Below, in pieces: positions 1 to 61,605 of a DNA stretch of 64,000 bases. Source of the DNA: Laetmonice hystrix (Eukaryota). The stretch covers positions 4,278,001 through 4,342,000 of the forward strand of contig OZ249445.1 of assembly GCA_965235115.1 (NCBI GenBank). The letters run 5' to 3'. How positions within the stretch are numbered: the first letter of the stretch is position 1; each line of letters begins with the position of its first letter. The translations under genes were made by a program, and so were the position numbers. The notes beneath the pieces were generated by a model. The model was not told where the DNA came from, ran no database searches, and saw nothing but the letters and a program-made list of their open reading frames with translations.

Positions 1-797
1 CAACAAGTGACGGCGACACGTGTGGCTTGTCTGGCCAGGCCGAGTGGTGGGAATCGCCGGGGCTGGGAGAGGGCTCAGGCTGGGGTGGGTGGGGGTTGGG
101 GGTGGCAGTGTTTTTAGGAGACTCGGGGAGTTCACCTGTTGAGTTGGCGTGAGAAACACTCCGACTTGCCACTCAACTTTTTAAGGCTAGCAGATTATGC
201 AACAGGAGGGGAACCCCAGGAGAAGGCACCTACCCTACAACCGCATCTCATCCTCCTCCCTACTGAAGCAACCGGGCAGTTAGTCCCCAGGGGCCCTGGC
301 TTCTCACGGGGTTAATTGTAGCAATGTTCAAAAAGTGGTAACAAGGCTTAAAAACAAGCAGTAGTTTTTGCAATGAAGGCCTACAGTTTCCAATTAAATA
401 GCTGATGACATGGGTGGATCCAGGGATTCTTTTTTTTTAGAGGGGGGGGGGCATATTTAGGCCTAGGCCTAAAACACAAGATAAATATTTTCATAATTGG
501 ATGAAAAAGAAAGTAGGATGGTTAATCATGGGCTAGAATTTAGGGGGGGGGGGGGGGGGGGTAGATCAGTAGATCTACATGTATACAGCACCAGGGATCA
601 TGAGTATATTCTGAGGCAATGTCTATTGATACTTGGTAAGTTTATGAAAATGTGAGGTGTTGGGTTTCTGACAATCATCCACCAGCTGCACCTATATACT
701 TATATATACAGTAATTGGATATAAAAATATGTTTTTCAATTTGCATTCAATACTGTGTGGGTCAGCAGTTTTTCATGAAACCGTTCTTGATCCATAG

Positions 798-3700: not shown

Positions 3701-6700
3701 CTGAAAAAAACTAGCTTGAATTTGAAACTGGATGAGAATTTCCCAGTCATGAAATAAATTGCATGTTGATGACTTAAACATTGATTCAAAGAGAGTATGA
3801 TTTATTATGCATGACTCTGAACTCTCCAATGGAGGACTACATTATTTTGTTGAAACCTATATCATTAGGGATATTTTGAGATAGATAGTCATTAGTAATT
3901 AACCAAAAACATATGCAGAACTCAAGAATCAACAACAAAGGATCAGTTGAGAAATTTTGCTGTCACAAGTATGGTTTACCTTGTGAACAGGAAGTTACAT
4001 TTCCACGTGTGAAGAACTGATTTGAGCTCAAACATTATAGGAAGGGGTTTCCACGTGTACATATTGGCATTACCAGGTCATCCATGTCACATAAAGAATG
4101 GTGGGGTAAGATCGGCGTTTGATTCAAGATGACGAGTCAACTCTCTCTTATTAATTATTCCCAATGTACATATAATTTATTTACAAATGCACCATGATAT
4201 ATTTTTCCCCCTGAAAAGAAGATCAGATTCTATGGAAATACACACCAATAAAACAAAACAATTATTGATAGCATTACATCTACCAGTAATATTTTGACCC
4301 AAAAAATCTGGTAATCCTCTACATTCTTTACATGAATTATTGAACCCATGGACAAATAATTTTGCAGCAGATGCAACAATCTCACAATTGCTAACCATTT
4401 CAGAATTTGTCTCTGCGTAAAAGGGCAAGTATTGCTGTAGCTCTGTGTGAAAATCACCAATTAGCCCATCTGGCGCTGATTTTCTTTGTGTAATTGCAAT
4501 ATTACAGAAGAATACAGCCTATGTCGATGATTAGTATTGATGTGTTGCATACAAAACATGACTGGACGGTTCTGCAGCACTGTAACTGGCTTTGATTTAT
4601 TGTGATTTGTGTGATTGTGTACTAGGCATCTGGTGATTATAATAGAACTTGCATGGCATGTGGCAACAATTTCAAATGGCCCCTACTTAACAATTTTTTG
4701 CATGAAAATCTGAGGTAGTTGCTGATAGTGTTGTAGACTGTACTACACCTTGTCCCTGTTTGTGCTGTGATCGTGCATGTAGCCAACAGAAATGAGATTG
4801 TGTACCGCTTAAAAGTGTCCCTGCAGCTAAGCCTTGTAACCTGTGCATACAAACCACCAGAGTGATAGTGTAAGGTCTCTCAGGATAAGAAGAACATGTT
4901 TAGGCCTACATGAGATAGCTTATCATCGCCGCTATAGAGTCCCAATTCATCATTACAACCAGTATCTGACTATCGTTGGTATTTGAAAATCTTGGAACAG
5001 AGGTTGAATATACATAAATCGTCCTAGTAGCACATGTCTGTAGGTAAATAGGAAAATACCTTGCCAGTTCCTTTTTCCCGTGAGAGGAGGTCCCCTTGCA
5101 TAATATTCCATACCGGTATGCCTGTAGTGGTCACTAAGTAATTTTGTGCAAAATACGAAATGTCCCCGCTGGTTATGTTGGGAATGCATTATTCATAGAT
5201 CTGGCTAAAGGTCAATTTAGAAGAAATTGAGACATTCTGTGTGATTATAGGAGAACACCCAGTGGGTTAATGCGGACTGCCTCCTGCAAACAATGTGAAT
5301 TAATTCTGGGTCAACTGTTTGCCAGATTAGTCATGTTCTGCTGGGGTCATGCATTTAAAGTTGAGAATTGACTATATTCTGTGAAACAACAAGGTGTTAG
5401 AGCCATGTATCACAGTCCAGTGAGACGTGCTATATTGTCAGGACGGTCAGCTAGGCCAGGGTTTTGTCGATATGTGTACAAGGGCATGTTGGGGTTTACT
5501 AGACTAATGTTTACCCACTGGACCCTGCAGTGAGGTGGGATTAATGTCATCAGGCACCACGGAGCAAGGGTCCAAGGTCCATGCCTGGAATCATTGATTG
5601 TCCAGAGATTTAGTACTTCAGGAGTATGGCCAGACATGTGCTTATATAATGAGTATTCGGTTCAGTTATCTCTATATTGTCAATCTTTTTGGTGGTTGAG
5701 ATATTGAGATTTAGCCATTACCCATTCCTTTAAAAATATTTCAGCCCATATGCAGTGATAGAGAGGATGATTTCAGTGAGCAAATAATAGAGCTATGAGC
5801 ATCGTAACAAGGAATATGAGTAAAATAACAAATGTTCAAGTTATCTGATGAATGATGGCGAGGACAACGGGCCGCAATGTTTGACAGAGGAGTATAGATC
5901 CAGAAGAAGGGTGATGTACGCACAATGTGATTGTAGTAGGAGTAAGGTCTGCTTCATTGACATGCTGGTGGTCGTATTGTTTCAGGAGCGGCTCTTTGAC
6001 CTGCTGCCTGACATGGTGCTCACCCCTACTAACCCTATCACACTCAAACCACAGTCCAAATCTCGAGTGCAGGTACTGTATGACATGCCCAGCATGTTCC
6101 ATCTTACCTCTCCTCCGCCAACACCCAGCCGACACCAGCCGCTCGCTCCCCCCGCACCGACTGCCTCCAGCCTCAGGCCACTGCACGGCCAACGTTCGTC
6201 GGAGAATGGCGATTTTCAGTGTATTGTGAACACTTAATTTGTGGATGATCGTGCTTCATTGTGAATAATCTCTATGTGTCGATAAGAAGTCAATCCAGAT
6301 CTTACCGTAATTCCATTCAGATGCTACCATTCTATTTGATTATTGCCATACTAGTGACCCATTTCTTACATAATAGATTATAATTTTAAAGAAACGTAAT
6401 GCAAAAGGGAGTGCAGCCACCCATCAAGGGTGTTGTGATAAACTCTTGATCTCGTGGTGTTGGTGAGGAAAGGTAGAGGAGAAGATCCACCTTTATTGTA
6501 TAATAGTATGTGACAGAGCTATACTAACCCACTAACAGTATCACTGCAAGCCTTTTACTTATAAATTCATACCCTTTAATTTAATTCGGACTAGTTTTTA
6601 AAAAGCAGAGACTATCAGGATCGGCATTGTACAGATCAAAGACAGTGCTGATTTTGGTCGGAATTGTATTCACGCCAAGGACTGTCAAATTTAGTGGTCT

Positions 6701-29988: not shown

Positions 29989-31515
29989 ATGAATAGACCT
30001 AATAGAGATAGACTCTTGTATTCTTGTACACCGACAACCAATAGCTCAGACAGTCAGCTACAAACAAGTTCGACTATTAGAACACTGAGGGAAATGGAGT
30101 CTTCAATTGATCTTGCCACGACGAAGTTCCCATGGCGTGTTTTCGGCGTCGTGTTGGCAGTTCAGGTTTACGGTCTTCTCGTCGGCTTCAGCAGGGGTTC
30201 AGTGTTAGATCCAAGGATAGGGATAGGGCCAGGTCCCCCGCCGTCCACCCAAACAACTCTGGTCGGCACGGCAATGTTCGCGGGGGGTACAATAACTGGG
30301 ACATTAACTCTGTTGCTGGGCGACAGGTTAGGACGCAGGAGGCTGATCATAACTTCAGGTTTTATCATGCTGTGTGGTTGGATCGTGGTATCCTCAGCAG
30401 GCACCAGCTGCACCGCGCTCTACTGTATCGGCCACGTTTCAATTGGACTTTCAGTTTTTATGTCCTCCATTATGGTTCCTGTGTACGTCGCGGAAATCTC
30501 GCCTGCAAGATACCGTGGAGGGTTCTCAGTTATAAACCTGCTGTTTGACTACATCGGTGTGACCCTGGCCCACGTCCAGTGGCGCCCTCTACCGACACTG
30601 GCCGCCGTCACATCAGGGTTAGTCGTGATCCCACTGCTGTGGATCCTTCCCGAGTCACCGCCCTGGCTCCTCGCCTGCGGTCGTGAGGATGACGCCAAAC
30701 TATCGTCTGCCTGGCTTTGCGGACGCTCACCACCTCAAACAGCAGACGACGGACGCTCAAGTCCGGTGAGAGAATACGGCCAGGGGACGCTAGCCACAGC
30801 GTCCTCCTGTCGGTCAATCACCGAATGGACAAACGCTCGATTCTATAAGCCAGCAGTTGTTAGTCTGTTTCTGTCATGGACGGAGATATTTTCATCTCGG
30901 TTTCTAGCCTCATACCTGTTAGTTACATACATGTCTCACTTTCCCAGTGACCTTCAGGTTATCCCACTAGTCATACCCCTGTCTGTGACGGTACTCGGGT
31001 GGACGGCTTCAGTTGGCAGTATTGACTGTTGGGGTAGACGACCCCTCCTGACCATCGGATTACTGCTGACCAGCGTCTGTTACGGAACGCTGGGGGTCTC
31101 CTGGGTGACACTGGCAGCGTTCGACAGACGTACCCCTGCCTGGATCGTCCGCTCCCTATTTGTTGTTCTACTCTTCGTCCGGGCCTGTTTCGTGTGGCCG
31201 GCCACGTCGGTTGCTAAGGTGGAAGTCCTCCCCATGGAGACAAGAACGCAGGTGCTCGGCTTATCGACCCTGCTCCAAACCTTGACCCAGGTGGCAGTCC
31301 TCAGACTCCTGTCCGCGGACCACATGGTCTCCATGGACGGTTACTCCATTCTCCTGGTCGCGGCCTTCGTTGACCTTATCAACGTTGCTGGAGTTCGATT
31401 CTTATTACCAGAAACCAGAGGGAAAACACTCAAGGAAATCGACGATATGTTTTCAGATCGTAGGAGTTTAATTGGACAAAAACGAGTAGTTCTACTGGAG
31501 AAAACTTATAACTAA
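29989..31515 (+). CDS. MFS sugar-porter family transporter (Tret1/GLUT8-like, divergent), single exon, 508 aa
   Basis: Motifs GDRLGRR, VPVYVAEISPARYRG, LPESPPWL, IDCWGRRPLL, EVLP, LPETRGKTLKEID and many hydrophobic segments. The true start could be the later Met (MESSIDL). Confidence 0.88.
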   Translation: MNRPNRDRLLYSCTPTTNSSDSQLQTSSTIRTLREMESSIDLATTKFPWRVFGVVLAVQVYGLLVGFSRGSVLDPRIGIGPGPPPSTQTTLVGTAMFAGGTITGTLTLLLGDRLGRRRLIITSGFIMLCGWIVVSSAGTSCTALYCIGHVSIGLSVFMSSIMVPVYVAEISPARYRGGFSVINLLFDYIGVTLAHVQWRPLPTLAAVTSGLVVIPLLWILPESPPWLLACGREDDAKLSSAWLCGRSPPQTADDGRSSPVREYGQGTLATASSCRSITEWTNARFYKPAVVSLFLSWTEIFSSRFLASYLLVTYMSHFPSDLQVIPLVIPLSVTVLGWTASVGSIDCWGRRPLLTIGLLLTSVCYGTLGVSWVTLAAFDRRTPAWIVRSLFVVLLFVRACFVWPATSVAKVEVLPMETRTQVLGLSTLLQTLTQVAVLRLLSADHMVSMDGYSILLVAAFVDLINVAGVRFLLPETRGKTLKEIDDMFSDRRSLIGQKRVVLLEKTYN

Positions 31516-33990: not shown

Positions 33991-36900
33991 ATGATGTCGG
34001 GTATTTTCCTGTGGAACCTGCTGACCCAGGCGTACAGTCCGAGCGCCACCTACTCCGGGCCCCAGCCACACATCGTCCTCCTGGTCGCCGATGATCTTGG
34101 TAATTGTACAGTACCGTTATCAGAATGGTCAAGTAGATTATGTACCGCCCCATGGTATAACGAAGACCTTGGTTGTGTTTTGACGAACTGAAGTTAGTTT
34201 AATTCGATCTCTCTACACTGACAAATGTTGCTAACTACGTGAAAAAACACGTGCGTCTCCCTCGGAGCGGTAGGCGATAATTCAGTCCTTCAAAGACGCG
34301 ACTACCACCTTCAGTACAACCCTAAAACGCGCGACTATAAATTTCAGTACGTACGATCGTCACACTCCCACCAATCACATTCACGTACAAACAACTATAC
34401 CTTTAAACATGTGATTCAAAACAAAAACTGAATGCCATTGAAGGCTTACACTAATACTAGAGTTGCAATAAAGTCATATAAGAATGTTCTCTGGGGTAAA
34501 TAAATCTTCTCATTATAAGAATGTTCGCTTGGTTAAATAAATGACCTCATTAAACTTAGGTCTCTAACTAGATCGCATCTGTCCGTTGGCATCAAACGAG
34601 AGAGAAAGAAGTTAAGTCATTCAGCTTCCAGCAGCACTGTCACTTTCTGTACAGGCCTTTCCAGGACCGTGGGCTGGCCGGTTCGCTTCCCAGCCTTATC
34701 CAGAACGGCCGGCATCCTGACCTTCACTCTCCGCACAAGTCCGTCATCACTTGCCGTGGTTTGCACAACTCGACCCAGTGGCCACCTATTCCTCCCAACT
34801 TCCTCCGTACAGACCAGAACTATGTCTCCAACCTTTACATTGCGTCGCGTCTTGTGCCACTTTGATCTGAGCTGTATGCTGCTCAAATACTCCTTTTTCC
34901 ATCTTGACCAAAATTGTTCACACAAAAACTGCACCTTCCTCCACCGTTTCTTGATATACAGGTCTTGTCGCACGAAGCTTCCTGGTGGGGGCATAGCCAC
35001 CTTACTTTTCATGGTCAGGATGTGGTTCGGCGTGAGTGGTTCCAAAGCTGTAGGATCGTTCAGTGTATCCGTAGTAAGCGGCCGACTATTCACGATTGAC
35101 ATGACCTCGTAGAGCAGGGTTCGAAGGGTTGAGGTGTCGAGACGACCGGCTGCTTCTTTCAGCAGTGTCGTTAGGATGCTCCGTACCGTTCGGATCTGGC
35201 GTTCCCAGAACCCTCCACAATGGCTGGCGTGAGGTGGATTGAAAGTGAATGTGCACTGTTGATCTGCCAAGAAACCTTCCACCCTTTCTGGGTCCAACTC
35301 CTTAAATGCTTCTGCCAGCTCGCCTGCTGCCCCAATGAAGTTGGTTCCCTGATCTGAGTGTAGTGTCGACACTGGCCCTCGAATGGCGATCAAGCACCTC
35401 AGCCCGTTGATGAAACAATCGGTGGTCATATCGTCTATTACCTCAAGGTGAACAGCACGGGAACATTTGCAGGTGAATATCAGCCCGTAACGCTTGACCT
35501 CCCTTCGTCCTTCCTTGACCACTATGGGGCCGAAACAGTCCATGCCAGTGTGGGTAAAAGGTGGAGTAGGTTCGATCCTTTCTTCGGGGAGGTCCGCCAT
35601 GCGCTGCTCCTCTAAAGGCCGACGCTTCTTCCGACATTCCACACACCAAAATATTGCACTCGAAACCGTTTTCGCACCACCCAGCACCCAATATCCGTTT
35701 GCTCTCAATGTATTGAGAGTCATTCCCTTGCCACTGTGGTTGGTTTGCTCATGGTAGTGTGCAAGGATCAGGTTCGTAATATGGGCACCCTTCGGCAGTA
35801 TTGCGGGGTGCTTAACACAAAGGGGTGATGTGGTCTTTCTGAGCCTCCCACCAACTCTCAGCACTCCATCCACTAGAACCGGGTCTAAGTTAGCCAGACG
35901 GTTTTTCCTTGGCAGACCGGGTGGTTGACTGAGCATTGCCTTCTCTTCCTTGAATTCCTGCTGTTGGAGTACTCTGACGAGCAACATTTCTGCCTTTCGT
36001 CTCTCTTCTACCGTGCTCATCTCCGAATGGGACCCTCCAGTGGCGCGACGGACCAGTCGAGCCACGACCTTGCAGACTAACTTCCAACTGGAGAACCTTT
36101 CGAGTCTGGTCAGCAGTGGATGCGAAGCTTCAGATCCGGTGGTAAGGAGTGAGTGGACCCTGACCTCAGGATCTCCCAAGTCTATTCCCAAGACAGGCTC
36201 CTCGAAAAACCTGAGTTCCTGCTCCTGCAAAAAGGTAGGTCCATTGAACCAACAAGACCGGTTCAACTCTTCAACAGCTTGACCTCTGGATGAGATGTCG
36301 GCAGGGTTGAACTCCGAAGGAACATAGTGCCATTGTGAAACCTCAGTTTGGGACCGTATGATCTCCACTCGATTGGCGACAAACGTGTGAAATTTCCTGC
36401 CTTCGTTTTGTATGTATGCCAACACCACTCTTGAGTCTGTCCAGAAGTGTTCAACCAGTTGTTCATATTGCAGCTCTCTCCCCAGCATCACACTTATTTT
36501 CACGGCTACCGTTGCTGCAGTAAGCTCTAGTCGTGGTATAGTGACGACCTTCGTGGGGGCAACCCGGGCCTTCCCAAAGACCAGGCTACAGTAGACACCT
36601 TCCTCAGTGACAAATCTCAGGTACGAACAAGTTCCATACCCTACAACACTGGCGTCCGAGAAATGGTGCAGTTCGATCACGACAGTGTCATCAACAAGGT
36701 TTGGGCAGAAGCATCTGGGAATCCTTATGTTGATCAGCTCCTTTAGACTCGACTTCCACGCCTCCCACTCGGGTTGCAAATCTGCAGGTAGGGTGTCGTC
36801 CCACCCGACCTTTCGTCTGCACATTTCCTGCAGAATCCGTTTACCGACTAGTATGAATGGGGCGACGAAGCCAAGCGGATCATACACTGATGCTACCATG

Positions 36901-39900
36901 GCTAATATACCGCGTCTTGTGGGAGGGCGTTCCTGAGGTGAGACGGAGAAGGTCAGGGTGTCCGAGTCCAGAGACCATTGAACTCCCAGAGCTCTCTCCA
37001 TGTGACCATCTTCAAGGTCTAAATCCTTGACTGCGGCTCTTTCCGATGATGCAATACTTGCCATCAACTCTTGACTGTTGGAAACAAACTTGTGCAAGTG
37101 CACCCCTCCTTTCCTGCACAGCTCCTGAGCCTCCCTGACTAGACATATGCCATCTTCAACAGTACGCACGCTCACGAGACCGTCGTCCACATAGAAATTG
37201 TTTCTAATGAACTCTGCTGCCTGAGGATAATCCGTGTCATACTTGTTGGCGATGTACTTCAGTCCATATATGGCGCAAGCAGGACTGGACCCAGCCCCGA
37301 ACAGGTGGACTCTCATTCTGTACACTTGAGGTTCGCTGTCTATGTTGCCATCCTCCCACCATAAGAACCTCAGGAGGTCTCTATCCTCGGGTCGGACAAG
37401 GAACTGGTGAAACATCCGCTCTATGTCACCGACGAATGCCACTGGATGTTTCCTAAACCTACAGAGGACTCCCACCAGAGGATTGTTCAGTTCAGGCCCT
37501 TTCAACAGGCAGTCATTGAGGGAGACACCCTGCTGTCTGGCTGAGCAGTCGAACACAACTCTAAATTTGTTAGGCCTTTTGGGGTGGTACACCCCATGGT
37601 GGGGAATGTAGTTTACTCGCCCGACTGCTCCTTCATTTGTGACACGCTCGGCCTCGCCTTTCTCGAGCACATCCGCCATAAATGCTCTATAATCAGCGGC
37701 ATAACTTGCGTTGCCTTTGAACTTCCGTCTGAGGTGTTCCAGCCTTATCTCCGCCATCCGTCTGTTGTTAGGCATGGATATAGTTGGTGACTTTACAGGC
37801 AGAGGCATTTCCACATGCCCATCTCCCCTTTGACGTGCCTGTTCACTCATGATCTTTACAAACAAGATGTCCTGCTGTGAAACCTTTTTCTCAGTGACAT
37901 ATTCATTTTCCACGAAATCAGACTCCAAGGCATTTATGACTTCACGAGGCGATATCACTGGAGCCTCCCTTGTAGAGATTCGATGACAAATGCCAGACTG
38001 TCGATCCAAGCAGGGGTTAGACATGCCGACCACACTCCATCCCAAATCTGTCTTTTGGGCGAACGGCTCCGATTCACTTCCCCCGATGACTTCGCGTGGA
38101 GTGAGAGCCCTGGGGCAGTCATAGCCAATTAGCAATCCAACCTCGCATGACTGTAGTGGCGGGACTTCATGTGCAATGTGACGCAAGTGGGGCCACTGTG
38201 AGGTGGTATGACAGGTGGGTATGTGCGACTTGTCGACGGGGATGTAGTCCCGGGTGTAGACTGTGGGTAGACCGACTCTTATCTCTGACCGCATGCCGCG
38301 AACCTGTAACCCTTCCAGCCGTTTGCAGTTTACTTCTGTGCCCGTCGACGTCATGGTACTGAGTTTCAGCTTCACTGGGGTACCCCCATGACACAACATC
38401 TGGCTAACCTCATCTAACACGAAAGTAGTGTCGCTCTGGGTGTCTAGAAGGGCGTACACTAGACACTCCTCATCAGGCTGCCCTACGTGCGACAACCATA
38501 CAGGTACGATGCTCGATGTCACTGGCAGCCGTTTGACACTGTGGGATATGGCTTGGGGTCCTGCCGGTCCTGTCTCCTTTACTTCTCCCCTCTTCCTCTC
38601 CTCATGCAAACAGGTCGGATGTCGTCCTTTACAGGTTTTGCATGTGTGACGTCTCCGGCAGTCGCTGGAAAAATGCCCTTTCCTCAAGCAGCCAAAACAA
38701 AGATGATTTGACCGAATAAACTCCCTCTTTTCGGGCATCTCCCTTCCTGCAAACTTAGCACACGCTGCTACGGCATGGTTGATGTCCTGGCAAAACATGC
38801 AAGGTGACTTGGGAGTAGTGTCGAGTTTTCCAGAGGCCTGAGCCGACTGACGTGACCCCACAGGCTGTGTCGATACCTTGACTTGAGATGGCTCACGGGC
38901 TCGTGATTCACCTTTCACGACGAATATGTTTGCTTCTTCTACCCCATCAGTGGCCAGACTTCTTCCTTTGGTTTCTCTGGTAGATACCTTTCCTCCTTTG
39001 TCCAACGACTTGAGGAGGTATGGCGAACAAACTGGGTTGCACACAACTCTGGCTTCTCCCTTTAAGAACTGGACGAATGTATGGAAATTGGGGTACGACT
39101 GGGTTTTTTCCATCTTCCCGACAACAACCCGATTCCAACGTGTCACTAGCCATTCAGGCAGCTTTTCCAGTATCTTCCTGTTTTCCTCACAGTCACTGAG
39201 GATCTCCAAGCCAGGGATATGTGGGATGGCACTCGACGTGGCAAACAAAAAGTCGCTGAAATCCCGTAACCCATAGACATCTTTGGCTCCCACCTTAGGC
39301 CACTTAGCTATTTTATCTCTGTAGGCCTCCTTTATCAGGAACACGTCCCCGAACCTTTCTTCCAGCACCCTCCATGCCTCGTAGTAGGCTCCCTCAGAAT
39401 CATGGTAGAAGAATCCTTCAATTGCCTTCCTTGCTTGGCCAGTTAAGTACTCCCTCAGATAATACATCTTTTCGCTCGCGCTAAGGCCCTTGCCCTCCAC
39501 CAGTGCGTCAAATGTCAGCTTCCATTCTACGAACCCAAGTGGGTCTCCAGAGAACACAGTTGGCTTAGCAGGAGGAAGTCTGCTGGCAGCAATGGACTCG
39601 CTGAACAGCCTAGCCAGCATGGTTATGTCCCCTCGAGGCTGTGGTGGTGTCCCAAAGTGTGGTTCACCTTGATCTACATGTGGCACCTCGTCTACAAAGT
39701 TTGTCACTTGGGGGATAGGCTGAACATCTGGATGGATAGGACTGTGGCGTGGAGTTGCAGGTTGGAAGCTAGGGGCAAGTGGATTCATGTTGGATGGCGT
39801 GTCCCGTCGCAGCCTTCCCTCTCTCGTCTCCATCGAACCCTCATCACAGGCCTCCTCTAAGACTTTAGATCTGGCCTCTGCTGCTTTAACATTGGCCTGA

Positions 39901-42900
39901 GCCTGCATGCTCTCCAACCTCATCTTTCCCTCCTCCAACTTGGTCTGTAGGTGTAGCAGTTTGACCTTTTGGACCTGTTCCTCTTCTAGAGCCTTGAGCC
40001 TTTCTCTTTCCTCTGCTAGTTCCGCTTCTGCTCTCACTCTCAAAGAGTACACGGATGACCTTCCAGTCCCAGCCGATGACGGGCAAGATTGTTGTTCACT
40101 AGCTGATTCCCCAAAGATTGATGGGTGAGCATGTTTCATGTCTCGCGTTTGCTCCCGCTCGTGTTTAAAGTCAAACTCCTCTGGATCCTCCAGACGGCGA
40201 GTGGTCAAAGTTTGGCCAAGCGCTTCTGAGATTTCAGCACAATTATCCACCTTCATAACGACTTCCTTAGTAGGGGCAACCAGTATCCTTAGCTCCTCGT
40301 ATGATTTCAGAACTTCACTATGGCGTTGGTTCAGTATAATTTGCATCTCAGATAGGTGTCCAAGTGTCAGTGGCGAGAGAAGACACTTCCTAGTTTTGGA
40401 GGCAGTCTCTCTCCACCTTTCGTAGGCGGAGTTAACTGTACGTGTTCTCCGGCTGATTTCCTCGTCAAGGTTTTGCTGTGCCTTTTCCGTCAACTTCCGC
40501 TCTCTGTTGCTCCTTCGAACACCATCCTCTTGCGGTGGTTGGGGTTCGAGTCTTGAGACCTGTCCCTGATGCTCCATAACTTGCACGTGATCTGGATTCG
40601 TCTCGGGATTAGGTATATTGCCCACGTCTGCGTCTGGCTTCGGTAGCTGTGCTCGTGCCTCTCCTTCTTGTTCCATAACTTGCACGTGATCTGGATTCGT
40701 CTTGGGATTAGGTATATTGCCTACGTCTGCATCCGACTTCGGTAGCTGTGCTCGTGCCTCTCCCTCTTGTTCCCCTTCTACTGAGTGACTGCGATTTGAC
40801 ATGATGAAGTTCTCTTCCTAACTAACTTGAACGACGGTTTAATATACTTCAGCAATGTCTTGACACAACTTCTTGTCACTGTATTGACGAGGCTCAGCAC
40901 CAACCTGAAGTACGGTAGTTGGCAATGGCCTAGTAACGACCTGACAATCCAATCAACGACTTGACACACATCCCAGGTGCTGACGATAACTTGGTTTAAC
41001 GTGACACTGCAGCAAACTCGACGACGACATGACACAGTCTCAGCACCAACCTGATGATTGGAGTAGTTGGCGACGATCACACATGTCACGACACAGCAGG
41101 CCTCGATGGCGTCACACGGTATCCACCCGAACTCCAACGTAATCAGTGTCTTTCGGATTCCATCCAGACTAGTAGCAACGACGTCGGACTGTAGCATCGA
41201 TGCATAATATGGTAGCGAAGGGCTTACTTGCGAGTTGTCCGGTAGGCTTCAGCTCAGGCATTCCCCGACATCACGGAGCACACGCAGCACATGGCTTCAC
41301 GTTTAGCTTGCGCTGTGTTGTTGTGATCGCGTGTGTTTTTTCACTGTACCGCCCCATGGTATAACGAAGACCTTGGTTGTGTTTTGACGAACTGAAGTTA
41401 GTTTAATTCGATCTCTCTACACTGACAAATGTTGCTAACTACGTGAAAAAACACGTGCGTCTCCCTCGGAGCGGTAGGCGATAATTCAGTCCTTCAAAGA
41501 CGCGACTACCACCTTCAGTACAACCCTAAAACGCGCGACTATAAATTTCAGTACGTACGATCGTCACAGATTAATTGGCGCACACTGAGCATGTATTATA
41601 CACAAAAAGGTCAGTGCTCTTTAGATAGGGTCTGTTTGATTATTGCATGACAAAAACTGTTGAGAAACACAGGAACGCGGCACGGAGGCCGAGAGCTGTA
41701 CGGTCCGGGGCCCAGATACTTCTCAACATGACTGAAGTGGCGGATGCAGTACAGCACACCTGCGTTGATCAGGCTGCTTGTTCACCACGTAGCCTCCTCA
41801 GACCCCACACCGCCCTCCAAATCCTGAATCCGCCCCTGAATTTACCGTCATTGTGATACTGTACACGATAACAGGCGTTTTGTTTCGGTGTCTGGAGGTT
41901 CTCTTGTCTCTTTTCTTTCTTGTCGTTCTTCCAAAAGTGAGAACGCAACTCTATAACCAACACATCCTTGAGACATCTGCAGTTAAACTAAATTTTATCT
42001 AACTTAATTTGGGTAGATAATTTTATGCAAAAACAGAGTCAATACAGGATGTACTAAGTACCATAGGGTTTCCAGTAACCCCCACATTATAGGAATGGGG
42101 CATATTGCCACATAATGGCACACGAAAGGTAAGTAGGTCTATAGATCTCCAAATTATCTGTTAATTATCTACTGCAGATATAGGTTTAGTTAGCCTGCAT
42201 GTTATTGTGAGATGTTGGAAATGGAAAATAACATGGACTTATGACAAGGGCCGTACGTGGTGTACCCAGAAACTGGACCCAGGGGGGTGCTGGAAATAAC
42301 CAACGTCGTAGGCGCTGCAAATTGGCAACAAGCGCACCAAAAAAACAAACCCCCAAAAATTTGGCAAATTGAGGGGGGTGCTTGAGCACCTCAAGCACCC
42401 CCCCCCCCGGGTACGCTACTGAAGGGTGCATGGAAACAGTTGCTGCATGGCCTGTCGGTCAACCGCGGTCGGTAAACACTTGAGGCCACACGGCTCGTTT
42501 CAGGAGCTATATATATGACCTGCCTTCCCAGTGGCCATCTTTTATGGGCTGGATAGTATAACCAGAGTACAATTTTAATTTCGTACCTGAGCAGTGATGT
42601 GAGGGGGAGAAGAAAGGTCAGCCGCCCACCCGCCCTTAAAAAACACCTGGCCAGTGGTCACACACCCATAACGTTGTCGCGATATCTCCATATCGGCGTT
42701 TTCGTGACCTCAGACCTACTTCCGGCGACGCCAGGTATAACAAACGCTTTCAGGCATTCTTTCCTTCGTTAGGTTTCGCTCGTAAAAAAACACGTTGGAG
42801 TAAATTACGCGTGAAATAGGAACGCCTGTATGCCTGGGGTGGGGCAGGGGGCAGGCATATAGATCTATAGTTTGCATTCACTGGCATCTTTTGGTAAAAT

Positions 42901-45900: not shown

Positions 45901-48900
45901 GGTAAACACATAATGACTTAAATACTTACTAATCACCCTGCCAGCCTACAGCTTGCCAGACCAAGTCTGCACGTGTCGAACGGGGCCCACGCCATGGCGT
46001 GTGACCCTCTGTTTATCTGCCAATTAACACTATGCTCATCACTATAAGGCACTTTTAATTGGGTTAGACAACGCAAACAACANNNNNNNNNNNNNNNNNN
46101 NNNNNNNNNNNNNNNNNNNNNNNNNNNNNNNNNNNNNNNNNNNNNNNNNNNNNNNNNNNNNNNNNNNNNNNNNNNNNNNNNNNNNNNNNNNNNNNNNNNN
46201 NNNNNNNNNNNNNNNNNNNNNNNNNNNNNNNNNNNNNNNNNNNNNNNNNNNNNNNNNNNNNNNNNNNNNNNNNNNNNNNNNNNNNNNNNNNNNNNNNNNN
46301 NTCCGATCGCTACAACAAGTTAAACCTGTGCCTTATATTCCATTCTTTTACTGTCACAGCGACCTGGATCTCCTGTCAATTTCATTTTGATCTCCCTACA
46401 GGATGGAATGACGTGGGCTGGCACAACCCGGCAATGCTGACCCCAAACCTGGACCGTCTGGCGTACAGTGGGGTCATTCTCAACTCATCTTACGTCCAAC
46501 CCGTCTGTAGTCCGTAAGTAACATAAACCCTCCTTCTCCTCATTGTGATGACGTCAGTAACATTATGACGTCAGTGACTCTCCACCTTACCATTATTACG
46601 TCAATGACGTGCCTCTCCACCTTACCATTATTGCGTCATTGACGTGCTTTTCTTATTTACCATTATTACGTCAATGGTGCAACGTCTGCCCGTCATCTTA
46701 CCATTTTTACGTCATTAACGTAGCGTCTACCTCTTCATCTTACCATTATTACGTAAGTGACGCAGCGTCTCTTCACGGTATCATTAATACGACCAGGAAA
46801 GTTTGATGAGGGCTAGATGCTAGCTCTAACCACGGTAAAGTAATAAAATTTGATCAAAACCAAAAGTAAACGCGTGTAATGGTACTATGGAGATACCAAT
46901 TAAGTTATAGTGGGATCACAAGGACCAAAGCCAGCACAAATCACCGGGGAGTGGCAGTCAAGATTTCCCGACAATCCTTTCGTTTATTGAGTACTACAAT
47001 ATAACGAGAGGAAACTACGCCATAAAAGACAGGGCAATAAATCCGAACCACTCCCAGCTGAGACAACACTGCGCCATACTTGTCACATTCTTGCCAGAGA
47101 ATTCTTACTGGGAGAAATCGGTCACCTCTTCTGGAGCGTGTCCTGGATACACAACACGGCGGGAAATGTCACTTCTTTTATGGAATCTCGACCTTTTTAT
47201 GGTGGTGACGGTGTGTGGTGAGTGTGGCGTGACATATAGCCCGGGTTTATGTCACTGTGATGTGATGAAAGCCGATACATGGTCACGTGCCATCACCAGG
47301 ACAGTTCCCGTCATGTTTCGTACTACCGTAGTATCTGTCAATGTCACGGTGGATTTTGAAATGATATTGAGATAACATCAGTCAAGGTCAAACTTTTCTA
47401 TTCGGATCCGTAACTACGACGGGCATGGCCGGTGAGGGGTGTATATCTGGTAGGAAAATGGATGGAACTATGACGGCGTATAAACGCGACTGGACATGAT
47501 TCATTATGTCACGCGCATGCATATTTTGGGAGACGTCCAATCAGAGATAGTTGTCCCACGTGGCGTGACGTATATGTTATGACGTATGCTGTGACGACAA
47601 GTGGTTCGATCCGAGCGCCCTCATACAGAGCCTCGTGTGGCCGCGATGTCCGTCATCGTTCAACTAACCCCCGCCCTAAACACTATCACTCGTCCCTTCT
47701 ACACTCCCTCCCAGGTCGTGGTTTACAAACACTCACCGGAACGACGCTTGTGTGGAGTCCCAGTGTCTGACGACCCGCACGGAACGCTGCCACAAGATGA
47801 CAGGACAATGACAGGTCATTCTCTTAATCTATATACTATAGGACCAGTGTCCCAAGGGAAGGTGGTGACCTTTAATGATGGACACAGTGGGATACATGGG
47901 ATCCCGCAAAGCTCCTCCTTAAAAATATTCGGGGGAAGACGGTTCTCAATGGATGCACGGTCGTACCTCTGTGGGCAATGACAAGGCATGGGTGACCTTC
48001 GATCTGACGACCATGACCTGACATTTCTGTGCAAACTCAAGCCGAGAACCGTTTTGACGGATGAGGAGCAGGATGGAGGCGGGGGGGGGGGGGGGGGTGA
48101 GGGAACTGACGGCCTTGTAGTGATGGATTATTGTAACATTGAGTGCAGCTCGGTCAGCCTATCCCTGTCATCCTGGGGAAAAATGTCCGTTTATAGAGAA
48201 TGCAGGTGCCCGTTTTGGGATGAATGAGATTTGACCTCTAAGTTTATGTGAGGAAATAGAAGTTTATGGACACCCCCTCAGTGATGTATGCGTCCGCTGG
48301 ATCGTACAATCTCAAGATGTTTCCTGATCAATATCACATTTCTCATAAAAGTATTTCACATTTTCACTTTTCAAACGGAAGATTATTTTCTGGCATTAGG
48401 GCTACATAATTGTTATTCATTGCGCATTATATCGCGTGCTTGACGATACGATCTGTGCGCATGGATGATAACATTTGGCATGTGTATTTCACTGCACTTT
48501 ACTGGAAAGTCCATAATCCAGTCTCCACATTTTAAACACTCTGACCTGTTAGATGCAGTGAAATGTTTTCAATGTTTGACCTGCTTGTATACTTTCAGGT
48601 CTAGATCGTCATATCTCACGGGATACTACCCATTTAAAATGGGAATGCAGGTATAATGTTCTTAGCATATAATTGCTCTACACAATGTAGTTAGATTGCT
48701 GAGGTCTACTTTAAGAATAAGAGAGACTGTCTCTATTTCATGCATTGACACGAAACTATACTTTTTTTGCGTATACGTTTTTCCCCTTGAACTTCTTACA
48801 CTGAGTCTGTGAGGTTTAATTCGAAGCACTTGGGCTGGGGTAATGTGACTTGATATCTATGACGCATGCAGGTTCACACTATAATATACTGTAACACATA

Positions 48901-53542: not shown

Positions 53543-55238
53543 AGGAGGTGCCGTCCTCCGTCAAAACGTTCCTTCGTCTCAGTGCGTGGATGACTGGATA
53601 CATGTTCTATATCATTGGTCCGTACGAAGTAGTAGGTATGCCACCCTCTATATGAAGATATGGTCAAAGCGTCAACGATGCAGAAGTCGTCACCTAAGAT
53701 ACACCACTACAGGGCATAGGGTATACCTGAGGCAAACATTAGCAATGCAATCTTGTATTAAACATATAATATATTATTTCAGAAGGTTACGATTTCTGTG
53801 ATCTTCTTTACATAATGATGTTCAAACAAAATCAGACGTACTCAAGCTACGCATTTTCTTGAGCAGCTAGGGCTTACACCAAAGATCTCACATAGAAAAC
53901 ATTCATATCTCTATGTAGGATTTGCGTACCAGCTTTGGTGGCTGAATGAGCACAAAATGCAACAATGAATGTGGGGAAATCGTCCTCGGCGTTGCAGCAA
54001 CATACATTAGCGAAATCAATGCAAACTCTGACACTTTGTATGGTAATACGTGTCTTTATTATATTAAATGGACCGATTCGGAATTTACCGAAATAAAAAG
54101 GCGAGAATAAAAGAAGAGGTCTTGTTCCTAGTATACACTGGAGGTTTCCACTTTTCGTCTTTATATCGATAGAAGCATGAACTGAAGCCGATATGTCGTA
54201 GAACAAACTACAGCGTTCAGTGTTGCTGAAGAAGCCGTGCCGTGCCGTGCAGCCACAACAGTTATATTCATACACGACATTCTTGAGTACATTTTTAGTT
54301 GGTCGTATCGAAGCTAGGCATATTCCGATGAGCAACATGTAAATTTTTTTTTTTTATTTTTTTTTGGAATGTTATCGATTTTTGAGCCTGAACCGTTTCA
54401 AACATACCACGTGGTGGTATTGTTAAGTTATAGAATAAGTAAATTCGAGTATCGGATACTAATTGGACTTTAACACCTCACAATAAACAGAACAATGATT
54501 ATCACAACCACAGAATTCATATATGACATCAGACTGCACCTGTTTTCAAAGGATTACAAATATATACAACTGGAATACGATGAGAGACATTGACTGGTAC
54601 GGTAACCGACATTTGTCAATGAGCCACATCAATGTATCTCGCCCACACAATTATATGTCCACCACTTTATGTACAATTGCCCTTTCATCACATTCCCCTT
54701 TGAGTCTAGTAGTGCGACAACACTTGGTTACAAGCAGACCTTTTATAAAACATGTTACTGTCCCCTTTCCTACCCACTTCACTTCTAATTCTGTTCTCAG
54801 TTACAACACTTTTAGAATTCACCTACCCTTCTTTTTTATACATAGATCTGTAATACTAAATTATTTGTCAGTAGATACATCTAAGACAATACTACAACAC
54901 ACGCATACATCTATACCAAAGCATATACATGACTTCATACAAAGATATTTGATACACCCATAAGTACCCGTGCACTCCTCTATACCCACCCGTACAAAGT
55001 TAGATATAAGACCCGTTGTGCATTTATCAGTTCAATAAGCTAGAAGTCACTGATGTCTTGTCATAATGTGTCTTTTACACTAGCTTATTGTTTATTATGC
55101 TATTGCCGGGGCATTTTTCAGAAGAAAAGATGGGCATGATGTAAGTAAAGGTTATCGTGTCCATCAGTACAAGCCCCTCGATTAAAAAATGTATTTTTAT
55201 TATTCCTATATGAGAGGAATCTATTGGTCGTAATACAA

Positions 55239-56912
55239 TCAATACAAGAACCTGTCGGTCATGATGGCTTGCCGGGCTGACGGCATGAAGCCAAGGGCCG
55301 CGTCCAGCGCGTACATCCGGGACAGCTCGTTTCCAAGGCGACGTTTAGTGAGTCCCTTGGACGGGTGAGAGCGCATGCTCAGTATGTGGTACGGATAGAC
55401 CTTACGTCCCATGAAATGTACGTCCGTCACAAGTTCATCCCCTCGGCTAGTTTTCACTGTGTTCAGTTCGAGTTTGTGTGTGGTCTTACGCCACGCCCGT
55501 ATTCTATACTTTAAGGTGTCTACCACTGGACCCAATGGTTGGTCACTGCCGCCATCCCAAGCGGCCGTGGCGAAAACCTTGAATGGCATTCGGGAAAACG
55601 GCCGCCCATTGATGTCATCCAGGAAAAAGAAAGAATAAGCCAAGGCGTTGAATCCGTACGGTTCCTGCGAAATCTGAATAAAGGCGTCCCGCAACGTGAT
55701 GTTCCAGGCCGGGATATTTTTCAAGGTGAGCAGCTCGTGGGCGTCCTGGATAAAGAACCAGTCGCCATGATTATAGAAACCTCTCTTAAAAACATTGTTA
55801 ATGATTTTAGTAAGGTCTTCAGGACCCGAGGCCGACAACTGGTCGATGACAACTCGACCAGCGATCGGAATATTGAGTTCCATGTTATTGCCCACTCTGA
55901 TCAGCACAACATGGAGCCGTTGTGCTAACATGATTTGAAGGTTGTATTCAACAATTGTTCTGTTCGTGCCTGGGTACACTATTAGAAACGCTGTCACTTT
56001 AATCCCAATATTAGCTTGGGTAGTCTTCCCTTCACTCCACATGCGTCTGATGTTCTTATTGCCGATAACTGTCAACTGATTTGGGAAGGGGTTGTCCTTC
56101 GGTAAGAAGCCTTTGTTGCAGCCCTCATACTTGTTACATATCCATCCGCTGAACATGACAGCAAATCCGTTCTCAGTCAATAACCGGTCCATCTCCTTCA
56201 CGGTCCATTCCCTGACGTGGCGCGGGTTGAGGGGAGGCCCACTGAGAGGCTGGGTCTTACCGAACACCCGGGCCGACCGCTCGCGATCCGGGGAGCTCAA
56301 CACCAGGGCCATGGCGTACCGCGCCATGTAGTTCAACAACTTTATGTAACAGTAGAAAGGGTCGATTAGATGTTCAATGACATCCGCTGATATTACAACA
56401 GCCTGGAACAAAACCTCCTTTGGGATCTTCACGTAGCATTTCTTCCCACGGTCTAAATTGGTTTCCATGAAGGTTAAGTGTGGATAGGCAGCCTTTGCCC
56501 TCTGGTAGTTTCCGCCGTTGTCGATGCCTATAACAATGAACTCTCCGGCAAGCTTGGCGAGCTTGCTGGCGCTGCCACAGCCAACGTCTATAATATACCT
56601 GGCGTTGTACCTCCTGGCCAGCTCGGCGGCCAGGTAATACGTAACCGGTTGGTAATCGTTCACCTTTCGGTCCAGGTAAACCTTGGGCTTCAGGCGGTGT
56701 TTGTAGGCGGGGAAAGAGATGAAGAAGTTTTCATGGAGTGGGTTGGTGGTGTTGATTTTATACATGAAATCTTCACCAGTGACAATCAGGTCATCGTCAG
56801 CGAACGGGTCGTGGGAGGTGGGCGAGTAGAGGTGACCTGTCAAGGTCAGCAGAAATATGGTGGTCGCCAGATAGATGATGATTGACTTCCATGGCCGCAT
56901 GGCAGACACCAT
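55239..56912 (-). CDS. Type II membrane protein: signal anchor, class I SAM-dependent methyltransferase and GT-A/GT2-like domain (557 aa from this ATG)
   Basis: TM SIIIYLATTIFLLTLTGHLY; SAM motif IIDVGCGS, VIGID, SADVIEHL, GPPLNPRHVREW; second domain KVTAFLIVY..HVVLI..DWFFIQDAHELL. Splice acceptor ttgttaccctcag with a CTAAC branch point lies 6 nt before the ATG. Confidence 0.85.
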   Translation of the reverse strand: MVSAMRPWKSIIIYLATTIFLLTLTGHLYSPTSHDPFADDDLIVTGEDFMYKINTTNPLHENFFISFPAYKHRLKPKVYLDRKVNDYQPVTYYLAAELARRYNARYIIDVGCGSASKLAKLAGEFIVIGIDNGGNYQRAKAAYPHLTFMETNLDRGKKCYVKIPKEVLFQAVVISADVIEHLIDPFYCYIKLLNYMARYAMALVLSSPDRERSARVFGKTQPLSGPPLNPRHVREWTVKEMDRLLTENGFAVMFSGWICNKYEGCNKGFLPKDNPFPNQLTVIGNKNIRRMWSEGKTTQANIGIKVTAFLIVYPGTNRTIVEYNLQIMLAQRLHVVLIRVGNNMELNIPIAGRVVIDQLSASGPEDLTKIINNVFKRGFYNHGDWFFIQDAHELLTLKNIPAWNITLRDAFIQISQEPYGFNALAYSFFFLDDINGRPFSRMPFKVFATAAWDGGSDQPLGPVVDTLKYRIRAWRKTTHKLELNTVKTSRGDELVTDVHFMGRKVYPYHILSMRSHPSKGLTKRRLGNELSRMYALDAALGFMPSARQAIMTDRFLY

Positions 56913-57297
56913 TCTGATCTGAGGGTAACAAAGACGGCCGTTCAGTTAGCGGGTTGACATGATATCAGCTAGCCTAGGCTATACCTTCCCAGCGCATTGA
57001 TAGCCTGCCAAAATAGGAGGGATACGTTTATGGGTATATACTTACTATATACATGTATAGTGATCAAGCGACTTAAAAACATAAATTGAGAGACTGACGA
57101 TGGAATTTACACCCAGAGTCATATAGCCATAGCAGGCCTCATGTTGTAGTAGGCCGTACTTTGGTGAACGATTCATAATGAAGTTGAAGTTAATTTTTCT
57201 TCTGGTAGCCTTGTGCTGACCTGAACTAGGTCGAATTCGATCCACCCTTTGGAAATCCTGGGGGCGTGGATATAGATTGTGTGGCGCCTATACTCAC

Positions 57298-57411
57298 ATA
57301 GTGGGAGAGACGTCGTCGTCGTTTGTAGTAGCAGGGTGGGATTACCCCTGCGAGCGGGCTGATCACCTTCACGGGCACTGCACGCGCTGAGCTCCGCTGG
57401 TGCGCCTGCAT
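57298..57411 (-). CDS. Probable upstream coding exon of the methyltransferase/GT gene
   Basis: MQAHQ..PCYYKRRRRLSHY ends at a strong donor (at|gtgagt, phase 0) and joins in frame to the acceptor at 56918 (atc aga ATG). Confidence 0.6.
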
Positions 57412-59397: not shown

Positions 59398-60018
59398 TGC
59401 TATAGGCCTACACAGTAGGCTAATAAACTTGGCAGGCGCACAACAGTCATTGCTCGCTTGACAAGTCTAGGTGTGGATCTCGGACAGGGGTTCATCTTGC
59501 CGTTGTTCACCTTGATGAGAGATAACTGCGCGTGAACCTTTACAGCCGTGCGGTACTGTGTGAAACTGATTTAGTGAAGATAGTGCACAAGGAAAGCACC
59601 GGTAGCTCGGAGTCGTCCTACACAGTCAACAGCGAGCTCACTTCCCAACATCTAGGCCTACTAGATCATGTAAGTGGAGATCTTAACTTTTAGTTTCACA
59701 CAAAACCTACTATGCCTACATTTTTAAAAATTTAATCTAAGCCTTAGCTACTGTTCTAGAGTTATTATATTCACCATGTTTCACGGGTGTTGCCATGATT
59801 TTCTGCGGCTGAGGGCCGGGGAGGGGGCAGTGGCAGTGGCACGCTTTTGAGTAGCCTAATATTGGTGTTGTATAATGAAAGTTCAATCTTTACGGGGTAA
59901 GTTGGTTTGGTGGGGGTGAGGGGGGGGGGGGCATGCAATTAGCCCCCTTCGGCCTACCCTGGCTACACACGTGCTTACCTGGGGCCGGAGACGGCGAAGA
60001 TTAGCCTATGTCAAGACT

Positions 60019-60310
60019 GCCCCAGGACTTCTGCCTCCCCTAGGGCATCTGCCCCCCAGACATTCGCCCCCCGGACATTAGCCCCTGTAGGACTTTTTCC
60101 TCCTAGGACATCTGCCCCCTAGACATTCACCCCCCCCCCCTCCTAACATTAGCCCCGTAGGACTTTTGCCCCGGCCCCAGACATTAACCCCCATAGGACT
60201 TTTGCCCCCCTAGGACATCTGCCCCCTAGGACATCTGCCCCCCAGACATTCACCCCCCCCCCAGATATTAGCCCCCGTAGGACTTTTGCCCCCTAGGACA
60301 TCTGCACATC
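60019..60310. repeat. Degenerate GGAC(A/T)..(C)n tandem repeats, probably the interior of a non-autonomous DNA element
   Basis: Repeated ggacatctgccccc, ggacttttgcccc and gacattagcccc units in the sHSP first intron. Confidence 0.65.
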
Positions 60311-61605
60311 CACCCACATTTTGCCTGTTTAGGCCTATATTATGAGGGGAGGCATAGGTCGTCCGCGATAGCGGGGGCAGGAGGGTGACGAAGTATAGCA
60401 AAGTTCCTGGAATTTGTAATGACCTATTTTGGCATTATAATGCTTTATATATAGGCCCTAGGTTTAGTGGCTGTACCAAGTCGTACACCCAGAATGAACA
60501 TAGACTAGGTCTATATGTGTTATACTGGTCTATGACAACTCCAGTGGATCCCACCGGTGGCCAGACGTTCTTGACCTCCTTTCTGTAAGGCCTTTGCGGG
60601 GCCGGGGGACGGCAGTCTGAACACCTCTGGCTTACTTGATTCCAGTTCACAAAGGTTATCTAGCCTCCAAATTCCAATAAGTCGAAACATGATAAAGATG
60701 CCAATAGCAAACATCCGTGTTATGGAAGTAAAATCTGTCGGCCCACACATGTTATTGTATCCGTATCTGGATATATTGAAATGATAGGCCTACATGGTAG
60801 ATGACCTTTCCCCTTAAAAAACCTTGATTGTTGCCAGCATTCGTACTACCGTTATTGGCAACCTTGGACGAACTGACAACAACCTCGACCAGTTTTTGAA
60901 GATAACATGAATCACACCACGTCATTCTGAAAGGTCACGTCAGGTCTATAAGGTTAAATCATGTAAACCCACAAAGGAAACGTCTAGTTCTAATCAGAAT
61001 GACAATGATCATAAAGAGGGGGGGGGGGGGATCTAAAGACCAAGGCCCAGTTTAACATCTGCCGTTCGTTTACATTGAAGGGCCCGATTCAGGAGCTTCT
61101 TCAGGTCTACAGTAGATCTATATACCTTAGGGGCAGTTCTAGGGTTCATAGCTAGCCCCAAGCCCAAAGCTCCTTAATTTCCTTCCGTTTCTTTTTTCCT
61201 TTATTTTTTTTTATTTTATTTGGGGGGGGGGGGGGGCTCGTATAAACAATTCGACCCCCCCTCCGAATCCGCGCCTGCAATACCAATAGGTTACGTTTGG
61301 TATGCTGGTTTTCGTGTTCCCAGCTGGCAAACGGCACTAGTTATCTGGTTTTACACGCCGGAAGTTCTTGACGCGGACGGCCCTGGTAAATGTTTGATCT
61401 GGTAATAGATACTCAGGCTTACTAACCAGACTTACTAAACGCCACGAGGGGTTGGTCCTTCAACCGTAACTCCTTTACCCCCTCAGTTATTAGTTGTTTG
61501 CATTAGGTCTAATAAACCTAGAGAACAGTCTTACAAGTATATTGCCTTTAATACATTGCAGCCTCTAGCTGGACTCGAGATTTGTACCAACTATAGCAGA
61601 GAAAG

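Follow-up and report, generated by a model that had tools for sequence, protein, structure and literature searches.

A membrane-anchored relative of bacterial methyltransferase-glycosyltransferase proteins in the annelid Laetmonice hystrix, a candidate glycan O-methyltransferase

The minus strand of a 64,000-nucleotide stretch of Laetmonice hystrix DNA (the window hereafter; positions 4278001-4342000 of contig C11, OZ249445.1, in a 627 Mb assembly of 35 contigs) carries an intact gene for a protein of 557 amino acids. This protein joins a complete class I S-adenosylmethionine (SAM)-dependent methyltransferase to a GT-A-like domain derived from family GT2 glycosyltransferases. The account that we favour, with moderate confidence, is that of a single-pass, type II-like lumenal protein, seen only in annelids, that would descend from bacterial proteins uniting Methyltransf_23 (MT23) and GT2 domains. 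It would likely act in glycan O-methylation, and its GT-A domain would be non-catalytic. The gene is almost certainly real and functional.

Results

Layout of the protein

Conservation is counted below over 61 two-domain sequences: 14 animal-like proteins, called the clade, and 47 bacterial or metagenomic proteins, called bacterial for short. The main features are the following.

55239..56912, minus strand: complete coding sequence (557 codons and a TGA stop) in one exon; from the open reading frame (ORF) and from tblastn with the paralog and relatives.
56832..56885, minus strand: predicted N-terminal hydrophobic signal-anchor, residues about 10-27, behind a short tail that carries R6 and K9; the 18 residues 11-28 have a Kyte-Doolittle mean of 1.88.
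56043..56735, minus strand: class I SAM-dependent methyltransferase domain, residues about 60-290; from Foldseek and motif conservation.
56571..56588, minus strand: SAM-binding motif I, DVGCGS, residues 109-114; D109 and G113 invariant, G111 in 13/14 clade members and 47/47 bacterial proteins.
55242..56006, minus strand: GT-A-fold, GT2-derived domain, residues about 303-557; from the domain model, Foldseek, VIA-align and a profile match.
55734..55745, minus strand: DAHE, residues 390-393, remnant of the bacterial H-x-D-A-D-E motif; from the alignment of the 14 clade members with the 47 bacterial proteins.

The AlphaFold model of the whole protein, built on a 17-sequence alignment, has two alpha/beta domains, with a predicted local distance difference test score (pLDDT) of 81.8 and a predicted template-modelling score of 0.83.

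A complete class I methyltransferase

Motif I is followed by IGID (residues 128-131), DVIEHL (177-182) and GPPLNPRHVREW (225-236). D131 and D177 are each present in 13/14 clade members and 46/47 bacterial proteins; we take the first to be the ribose-contacting acidic residue that ends strand 2, and the second to be the acidic residue after strand 4. The full set of motif residues (D109, G111, G113, D131, N135, D177, E180, H181, P208, R210, G225-P-P, N229, H232, R234, E235, W236 and E240) is retained in 13-14 of the 14 clade members and in 43-47 of the 47 bacterial proteins, except that position 236 is W in 11/14. E180, H181, H232, R234, E235 and W236, the candidate substrate-side residues, occur in both the worm protein and its bacterial kin and thus favour a substrate of the same class in both.

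The core of this domain is modelled as a Rossmann-like seven-strand fold, with pLDDT mostly 88-96. Foldseek relates it to solved class I methyltransferases at E values of 1e-8 to 6e-10, with a probability of 1.00 for many of them. Its closest Swiss-Prot models are Rv3030 and MSMEG_2350 (E ~2e-9, template-modelling (TM) score by hit 0.50-0.54). In Pfam, the match to Methyltransf_23 stays below threshold (15.2 bits for a cut-off of 27); the relatives P0010 and P0023 pass it with 29 and 44.7 bits, respectively. An NCBIfam scan of the protein returned nothing meaningful. A first-pass annotation of the window, made from its letters alone, had read a complete class I methyltransferase with each of the motifs quoted above; their positions, fold and conservation bear this out.

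An anchor, a stem and four new cysteines

Ahead of the catalytic core, sequence and model agree on a short basic tail, a single anchor, a stem and a putative lumenal domain, which is the type II-like membrane topology that the same annotation had proposed. The model places a helix at residues 8-27 and a low-confidence or disordered stem at residues 24-58. An N-terminal hydrophobic segment (Kyte-Doolittle value of at least 1.64) is seen in 10/14 clade members and is absent from the bacterial kin; the other four clade members come from prokaryote-style gene calls whose start lies at the domain or close to it.

Residues C159, C188, C259 and C265 are found in 14/14 clade members versus 0/47 bacterial proteins. 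Two of them sit in clade-specific insertions, and the protein has only one further cysteine. From their pattern, the four would probably form two disulfide pairs. Three N-x-S/T sequons are present, at residues 54, 317 and 404. The anchor and the four clade-specific cysteines are the marks expected of a protein moved into an oxidising secretory lumen, and we regard such a topology, predicted from sequence and model, as very likely.

Bacterial kin and the likely substrate

The bacterial two-domain kin (PF13489 followed by PF00535, collinear with the worm protein) share 26-30% identity with it over at least 80% of its length, at E values of 8e-33 to 4.5e-41. These kin, of which a protein from a locus of Paenibacillus sp. 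MBLB4367 (L010), another from a locus of Thermacetogeniaceae (L012) and AlphaFold DB cluster A0A329LZL9 are examples, align over residues about 50-540, with the same methyltransferase motifs and a common D-W...D-x-x-E core in the glycosyltransferase half. The top AlphaFold DB cluster is a 611-residue "Glycosyltransferase 2-like" protein, aligned over residues 59-541 with a whole-model TM score of 0.64. The bacterial kin lack an anchor and all four cysteines, keep the full GT2 motif set and are encoded in rml/DegT/glycosyltransferase clusters; the worm protein is membrane-anchored, cysteine-bearing and degenerate in its glycosyltransferase motifs, and comes from a stand-alone eukaryotic gene.

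Both bacterial loci examined (2/2) are sugar clusters. In Thermacetogeniaceae, homologs of RmlA, RmlC and RmlD adjoin the gene. In Paenibacillus, its neighbours encode a GT2 enzyme, a CmcI-type rhamnosyl O-methyltransferase, a DegT aminotransferase and a nucleotidyltransferase, as well as a dehydratase, an epimerase and a reductase of rml type. Kinship with bacterial polysaccharide-locus proteins, which the first-pass annotation had suggested, holds over both domains. The methyltransferase subfamily is also fused, in other proteins, to GT2 arrays, to GT1/4 domains or to GT29-like domains. The last are seen in the metagenomic P0022, P0032 and P0033, large proteins with a GT29 sialyltransferase-like motif and two or three methyltransferase domains, one of which is 35-44% identical to that of the worm.

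Three characterised systems resemble the worm protein in part. The best-documented working model for its architecture would be WsaE of Geobacillus stearothermophilus NRS 2004/3a, in which an N-terminal 2-O-methyltransferase precedes two rhamnosyltransferase domains and methyl-caps the terminal rhamnose (PMC2943079). The comparison is one of architecture only: the methyltransferase is likewise N-terminal to glycosyltransferase domains and the end of a glycan is capped, but WsaE is soluble and cytoplasmic, with two active glycosyltransferase domains and a lipid-linked rhamnan as acceptor. PBCV-1 A064R has two rhamnosyltransferase domains and a C-terminal methyltransferase that 2-O-methylates terminal rhamnose (PMC9614988). 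Again by architecture only, it combines glycosyltransferase and class I methyltransferase domains and O-methylates the terminal sugar of a protein-linked glycan within a eukaryotic cell; it differs in its opposite domain order, active glycosyltransferase domains and viral origin. Finally, Rv3030/MSMEG_2350 is the 6-O-methyltransferase of mycobacterial methylglucose lipopolysaccharide (PMC4555173). These polysaccharide sugar O-methyltransferases head the Swiss-Prot structural neighbours of the worm domain, in a ranking that is shallow among class I methyltransferases; they are single-domain, cytoplasmic and 18-19% identical to it.

Taken with these analogies, the shared residues and fusions make sugar O-methylation an activity to which we give even chances. 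Alternatively, the enzyme would be secreted or reside in the secretory pathway but methylate, for example, a small metabolite, lipid or protein side chain, and its GT-A remnant would be purely structural. The substrates of Methyltransf_23/11-type class I enzymes are very diverse, the structural neighbours of the domain include UbiG, trans-aconitate, Hen1 and natural-product methyltransferases, and no solved relative matches it by sequence. Against this stand the repeated fusion of the subfamily to glycosyltransferase domains, its place in sugar-biosynthesis loci and the candidate substrate-side residues common to worm and bacteria; we consider a non-glycan substrate unlikely.

Lumenal methylation needs import of SAM. 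Two loci of the MFS_5 family, to which C. elegans SAMT1 and the plant GoSAMTs belong (bioRxiv 10.1101/2021.07.06.451061), are present in this genome; the family is widespread, so that their presence shows feasibility only. One of them (L090, C11:2026515-2030327, frame 1381-2688) encodes 436 amino acids in a single exon, 2.2 Mb away on the same chromosome. The other is multi-exon and lies on contig C13; L090 may be a retrocopy or a second SAM-transporter-like gene. The SAMT-1-dependent glycan methylation of C. elegans (PMC7614267) is the same process as proposed here, namely lumenal, SAM-dependent O-methylation. It differs in that no nematode member of the family occurs among the named two-domain matches, so the nematode enzymes must be something else.

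Distribution and origin of the family

Searched exhaustively with HMMER, a library of 1.84 billion cluster representatives yielded 1383 matches at E<=0.001, of which only about 25 are full-length close relatives. Orthologs at 80, 65 and 63% identity were found on ENA or Logan contigs. The same genome holds a 43% identical paralog on contig C3 (L005, C3:36864507-36868979, 1135-2976, plus strand), which is intact and single-exon, with its own basic tail, anchor and DAHE; two family members are maintained in this genome, as far as their sequences tell. Two hypothetical proteins of Capitella teleta, ELU18372.1 (39% identity) and ELT90428.1, are also full-length matches. In addition, the fragmented, AT-rich, eukaryote-like assemblies GCA_022702875.1 and GCA_022702835.1 contain at least four divergent copies.

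Word-indexed protein searches with the family alignment and with P0021, one of two orphan relatives, found no additional named eukaryotic relatives, and no mollusc or nematode member was seen among the two-domain matches whose names were looked up. With its sole named members in the annelid Capitella, the family cannot be a general animal glycan methyltransferase, and we rejected a pan-animal enzyme.

In bacteria, by contrast with these annelid-only names, the architecture is widespread. A scan of one genome per prokaryotic species for two-domain matches found them in Anaerolineae, Dehalococcoidia, Thermacetogeniaceae, Solirubrobacterales, Caulobacterales, Acidobacteria and Paenibacillus; the named loci span Chloroflexota, Actinomycetota, Bacillota and Pseudomonadota. 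Bacterial MT23+GT2 proteins make up 99-100% of the nearest ESM Atlas clusters, after which come phage clusters.

In the unrooted tree of the 61 two-domain sequences, the 14 animal-like proteins occupy one side of a branch with 100/100 support, and the 47 bacterial or metagenomic ones the other. Inside the clade, the lineage of the window gene is sister to that of the C3 paralog and P0010, which dates the duplication before the species split; the two Capitella genes pair with each other. When 164 sequences were compared over the methyltransferase domain alone, the tree again gave the clade a single origin (support 96) and placed it, with weak support and an arbitrary root, several nodes inside microbial sequences.

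We think a bacterial-type origin by horizontal transfer likely from these sequences; its direction follows from the many bacterial phyla set against annelid-only names, and from the lack of introns. Most likely, one old transfer into an annelid ancestor would have been followed by duplication. Old vertical inheritance within eukaryotes with loss from most lineages, or transfer from a eukaryotic microbe or virus, is distinctly unlikely in our view. It would fit the reciprocal separation of the animal-like and bacterial groups by a long branch in an unrooted tree, the phage GT2-methyltransferase clusters nearby in the ESM Atlas, the host-like composition of the gene and the methyltransferase-domain relatives that also bear GT29 sialyltransferase-like domains, GT29 being known mainly from eukaryotes. 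It is opposed by the full-length relatives, whose only names, in a search of that size, are annelid, by a coding sequence free of introns in all copies examined and by the spread of the two-domain architecture over bacterial phyla.

A GT-A domain without most of the GT2 motifs

Folded alone, the C-terminal domain reaches a pLDDT of 75. Foldseek finds SunS first (2e-7), then WrtF and SpsA, and VIA-align gives Z scores of 10-11 to WrtF, hyaluronan synthase, SunS, SpsA and TarS. A profile of the domain matches GmaR at E 2.7e-4, with the D-W...D-x-x-E core aligned. PF00535, present in the bacterial kin, has no match in the worm protein or in the eight animal-like relatives scanned.

SpsA, SunS/ThuS, TarS and GmaR thus have the same fold as worm residues about 303-530, but the worm domain is without the D-x-x-S-x-D nucleotide-binding loop and without a canonical DxD. 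In GT2 enzymes such as SpsA, this loop contacts the nucleotide, and DxD binds the metal and the diphosphate. The bacterial motifs lost or changed in the clade are these.

N316 (43/47 bacterial proteins), E317 (35) and D319 (45), the N-E-x-D motif: lost in the 14 clade members.
Residues 339-343, the D-N-W-S-D-T loop (D 44, N 39, W 43, S 47, D 47 and T 37 of 47 bacterial proteins): lost, with variable R/V/G/N and a gap in the clade.
H388 (39/47 bacterial proteins): lost in the clade.
D425 (40/47 bacterial proteins): A in 10/14 clade members.
Residues 486-489, S-G-G-H: lost in the clade.
Residues 514-519, H-Y-P-x-R-S: lost in the clade.

In the DAHE remnant, D390 is kept in 13/14 clade members and E393 in 12/14; position 392, D in 44/47 bacterial proteins, is H in 8 clade members and N in 6. 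D384, W385, N422, W474 and P507 are retained in the clade along with D390, E393 and clade-specific conserved residues. The domain is 73% identical to that of the closest ortholog, and the variants listed within it are synonymous only.

Since the clade lacks both the D-x-x-S-x-D loop and the canonical DxD, donor binding has presumably been lost, and the domain is probably non-catalytic, as judged from its motifs. The first-pass annotation had it right about the GT-A fold in the C-terminal half, which Foldseek, VIA-align and the GmaR profile match all recover. Its reading of DAHE as a functional DxH metal site in an active glycosyltransferase is not supported, given N at position 392 in 6/14 clade members and the loss of the other GT2 motifs, and a DxH-dependent active enzyme was rejected as the leading interpretation.

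The corresponding bifunctional enzyme, whose GT-A domain would add a sugar through a D-x-H metal site for the methyltransferase then to methylate, as in WsaE or A064R, seems to us quite improbable. The confirmed fold, the conserved D390 and E393 with H at 392 in 8/14, the constraint on the domain and the probable bifunctionality of the bacterial kin speak for it. Against it stand the losses just described: the clade has nothing that corresponds to D-N-W-S-D-T, whose S and D are found in 47/47 bacterial proteins; H388, D425, N-E-x-D, S-G-G-H and H-Y-P-x-R-S have gone as well; position 392 is N in 6/14; and PF00535 finds no match in the worm protein or in the close animal relatives scanned.

Integrity and genomic setting of the gene

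The reading frame is open over 568 codons around the 557-residue protein. In the paralog and in each relative's contig examined, tblastn matches form one unbroken segment, and the coding sequence is therefore intron-free in every copy examined, in agreement with the single exon first annotated. Two further features flank it.

56919..56934, minus strand: splice-acceptor-like polypyrimidine tract and AG, candidate end of an intron in the 5' untranslated region (5' UTR); from reading of the sequence.
55196..55201, minus strand: AATAAA, candidate polyadenylation signal ~40 bases past the stop codon; from reading of the sequence.

The acceptor-like AG ends at 56919, so that an exon could begin at 56918, six bases ahead of the ATG. 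In the 63% ortholog (L002), a similar polypyrimidine tract and AG lie ~18 bases ahead of the ATG, and the two sites together suggest a conserved 5' UTR intron.

Contig depth is similar over the ORF and both flanks in the three sequencing runs that look like genomic DNA; a fourth run, X4, covers only 55000-55740 and 56202-56556 of the gene, and its contig continues beyond the AATAAA. Of 15 variants listed inside the ORF, which are within-sample allelic differences, 14 are synonymous, pointing to strong purifying selection; the compared stretch has 10 further differences. The composition of the ORF (GC 0.51, or 0.65 at third codon positions) is near that of other host coding sequences.

We rejected as next to impossible that the gene is a contaminant from bacteria, a product of misassembly or a pseudogene in decay: the bacterial-type domains, the missing introns, the lack of any run on record as RNA and the bacterial contaminants reported in Capitella assemblies (PMC12403961) would allow it, but the gene lies on a chromosome-scale contig with even depth over itself and its flanks, beside Pao retrotransposon and MFS ORFs, its frame is intact with 14/15 synonymous variants, it bears eukaryote-type additions (the anchor, the four invariant cysteines, the acceptor-like site), and the paralog and orthologs lie on megabase contigs. 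Integration in an animal chromosome, as first annotated, is confirmed.

The gene stands alone, its neighbours being a retroelement and unrelated ORFs, with no sugar-biosynthesis cluster. The retroelement is a BEL/Pao retrotransposon with an uninterrupted ORF of 2061 amino acids (34617-40802, minus strand; Peptidase_A17, DUF1759, DUF5641), in agreement with the element that had been placed at 41333-41465. About 24 kb from the gene, a single-exon, apparently intron-free ORF of 508 amino acids (29989-31515, plus strand) encodes an MFS transporter (Sugar_tr / MFS_1 match, E 1e-37). A run of 219 N at 46083-46301 is an assembly gap or masked sequence. Upstream of the gene, at 57167-57363 and 59925-60318, three runs show summed contig depth rising from ~50 to 400-6000 and numerous small joints, as in high-copy repeats or a microsatellite-like region.

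No synteny was detectable between the window and the flanks of the 63% ortholog within 10 kb on either side. About 8 kb from this ortholog lies an ORF of 551 amino acids that matches no Pfam family (L001, 20011-21662, minus strand; L002, 19775-21430, minus strand). It is not a paralog of the methyltransferase gene and has no counterpart in the window.

Discussion

The account that we favour can be told as the domestication of a bacterial enzyme. After the transfer, the protein would have acquired a signal-anchor at its N-terminus, a stem and two probable disulfide pairs, and the gene probably an intron in the 5' UTR. The methyltransferase half, which keeps all donor-binding and candidate catalytic residues, would most likely use SAM to methylate a hydroxyl group of a glycan sugar, for instance on glycoproteins of the tube, mucus or cuticle, with the methyl group serving as a cap. 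The GT-A half, having lost its nucleotide-sugar-binding motif and yet being constrained, would most likely serve as a non-catalytic acceptor-binding or scaffolding module.

Several observations weigh against this account. Its taxonomic range rests on few named hits, the named full-length eukaryotic members being those of Capitella; of the orphan relatives P0019 and P0021, the latter is unplaced. The family is apparently absent from molluscs, nematodes and planarians, where methylated N-glycans are best documented (PMC6935376). A search of solved structures with the sequence of the methyltransferase domain found no match, so the substrate class is deduced from domain fusions and gene context only. 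As for the origin, the two-domain tree is unrooted, which leaves the direction of transfer to the distribution; in the methyltransferase-domain tree the nesting supports are weak (79, 79 and 58) and the rooting is arbitrary; and the GC content of the ORF, overall and at third positions, bears no foreign signature. All four sequencing runs that contain the locus lack a record as RNA, and three of them look like genomic DNA. Finally, H or N at position 392, with D390 and E393 kept, could bind a metal and thereby sustain residual or altered glycosyltransferase chemistry.

A bolder form of the account is one that we hold only tentatively. The protein would then be the first identifiable animal glycan O-methyltransferase: a captured bacterial capping enzyme of the Golgi lumen that uses its glycosyltransferase half as a glycan-recognition module and methylates glycoproteins of the annelid tube, mucus or cuticle. 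Methylated sugars are reported from the tube of the polychaete Alvinella, in work by Talmont and Fournet (1991) as cited in PMC4776704. For C. elegans, the glycan methyltransferases were still unidentified in a glycomics paper of 2023 (PMC7614267), and our literature search found neither a paper describing this family nor a glycan methyltransferase described for any animal.

The worm protein is a new eukaryotic variant of a bacterial enzyme family, whose Capitella members were already public as hypothetical proteins. Being so narrowly distributed, the family cannot account for the methylated glycans of nematodes or molluscs. Methylated animal glycans are targets of innate-immune lectins, and at least in annelids the gene offers a concrete, expressible candidate for their O-methylation; the genome of Capitella teleta, with its two members, could serve for genetic tests. 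More generally, the family would show clearly how an enzyme of bacterial sugar chains can be refitted for the eukaryotic secretory pathway, with an anchor, a stem and cysteines gained and one catalytic domain decayed to a probable pseudoenzyme.

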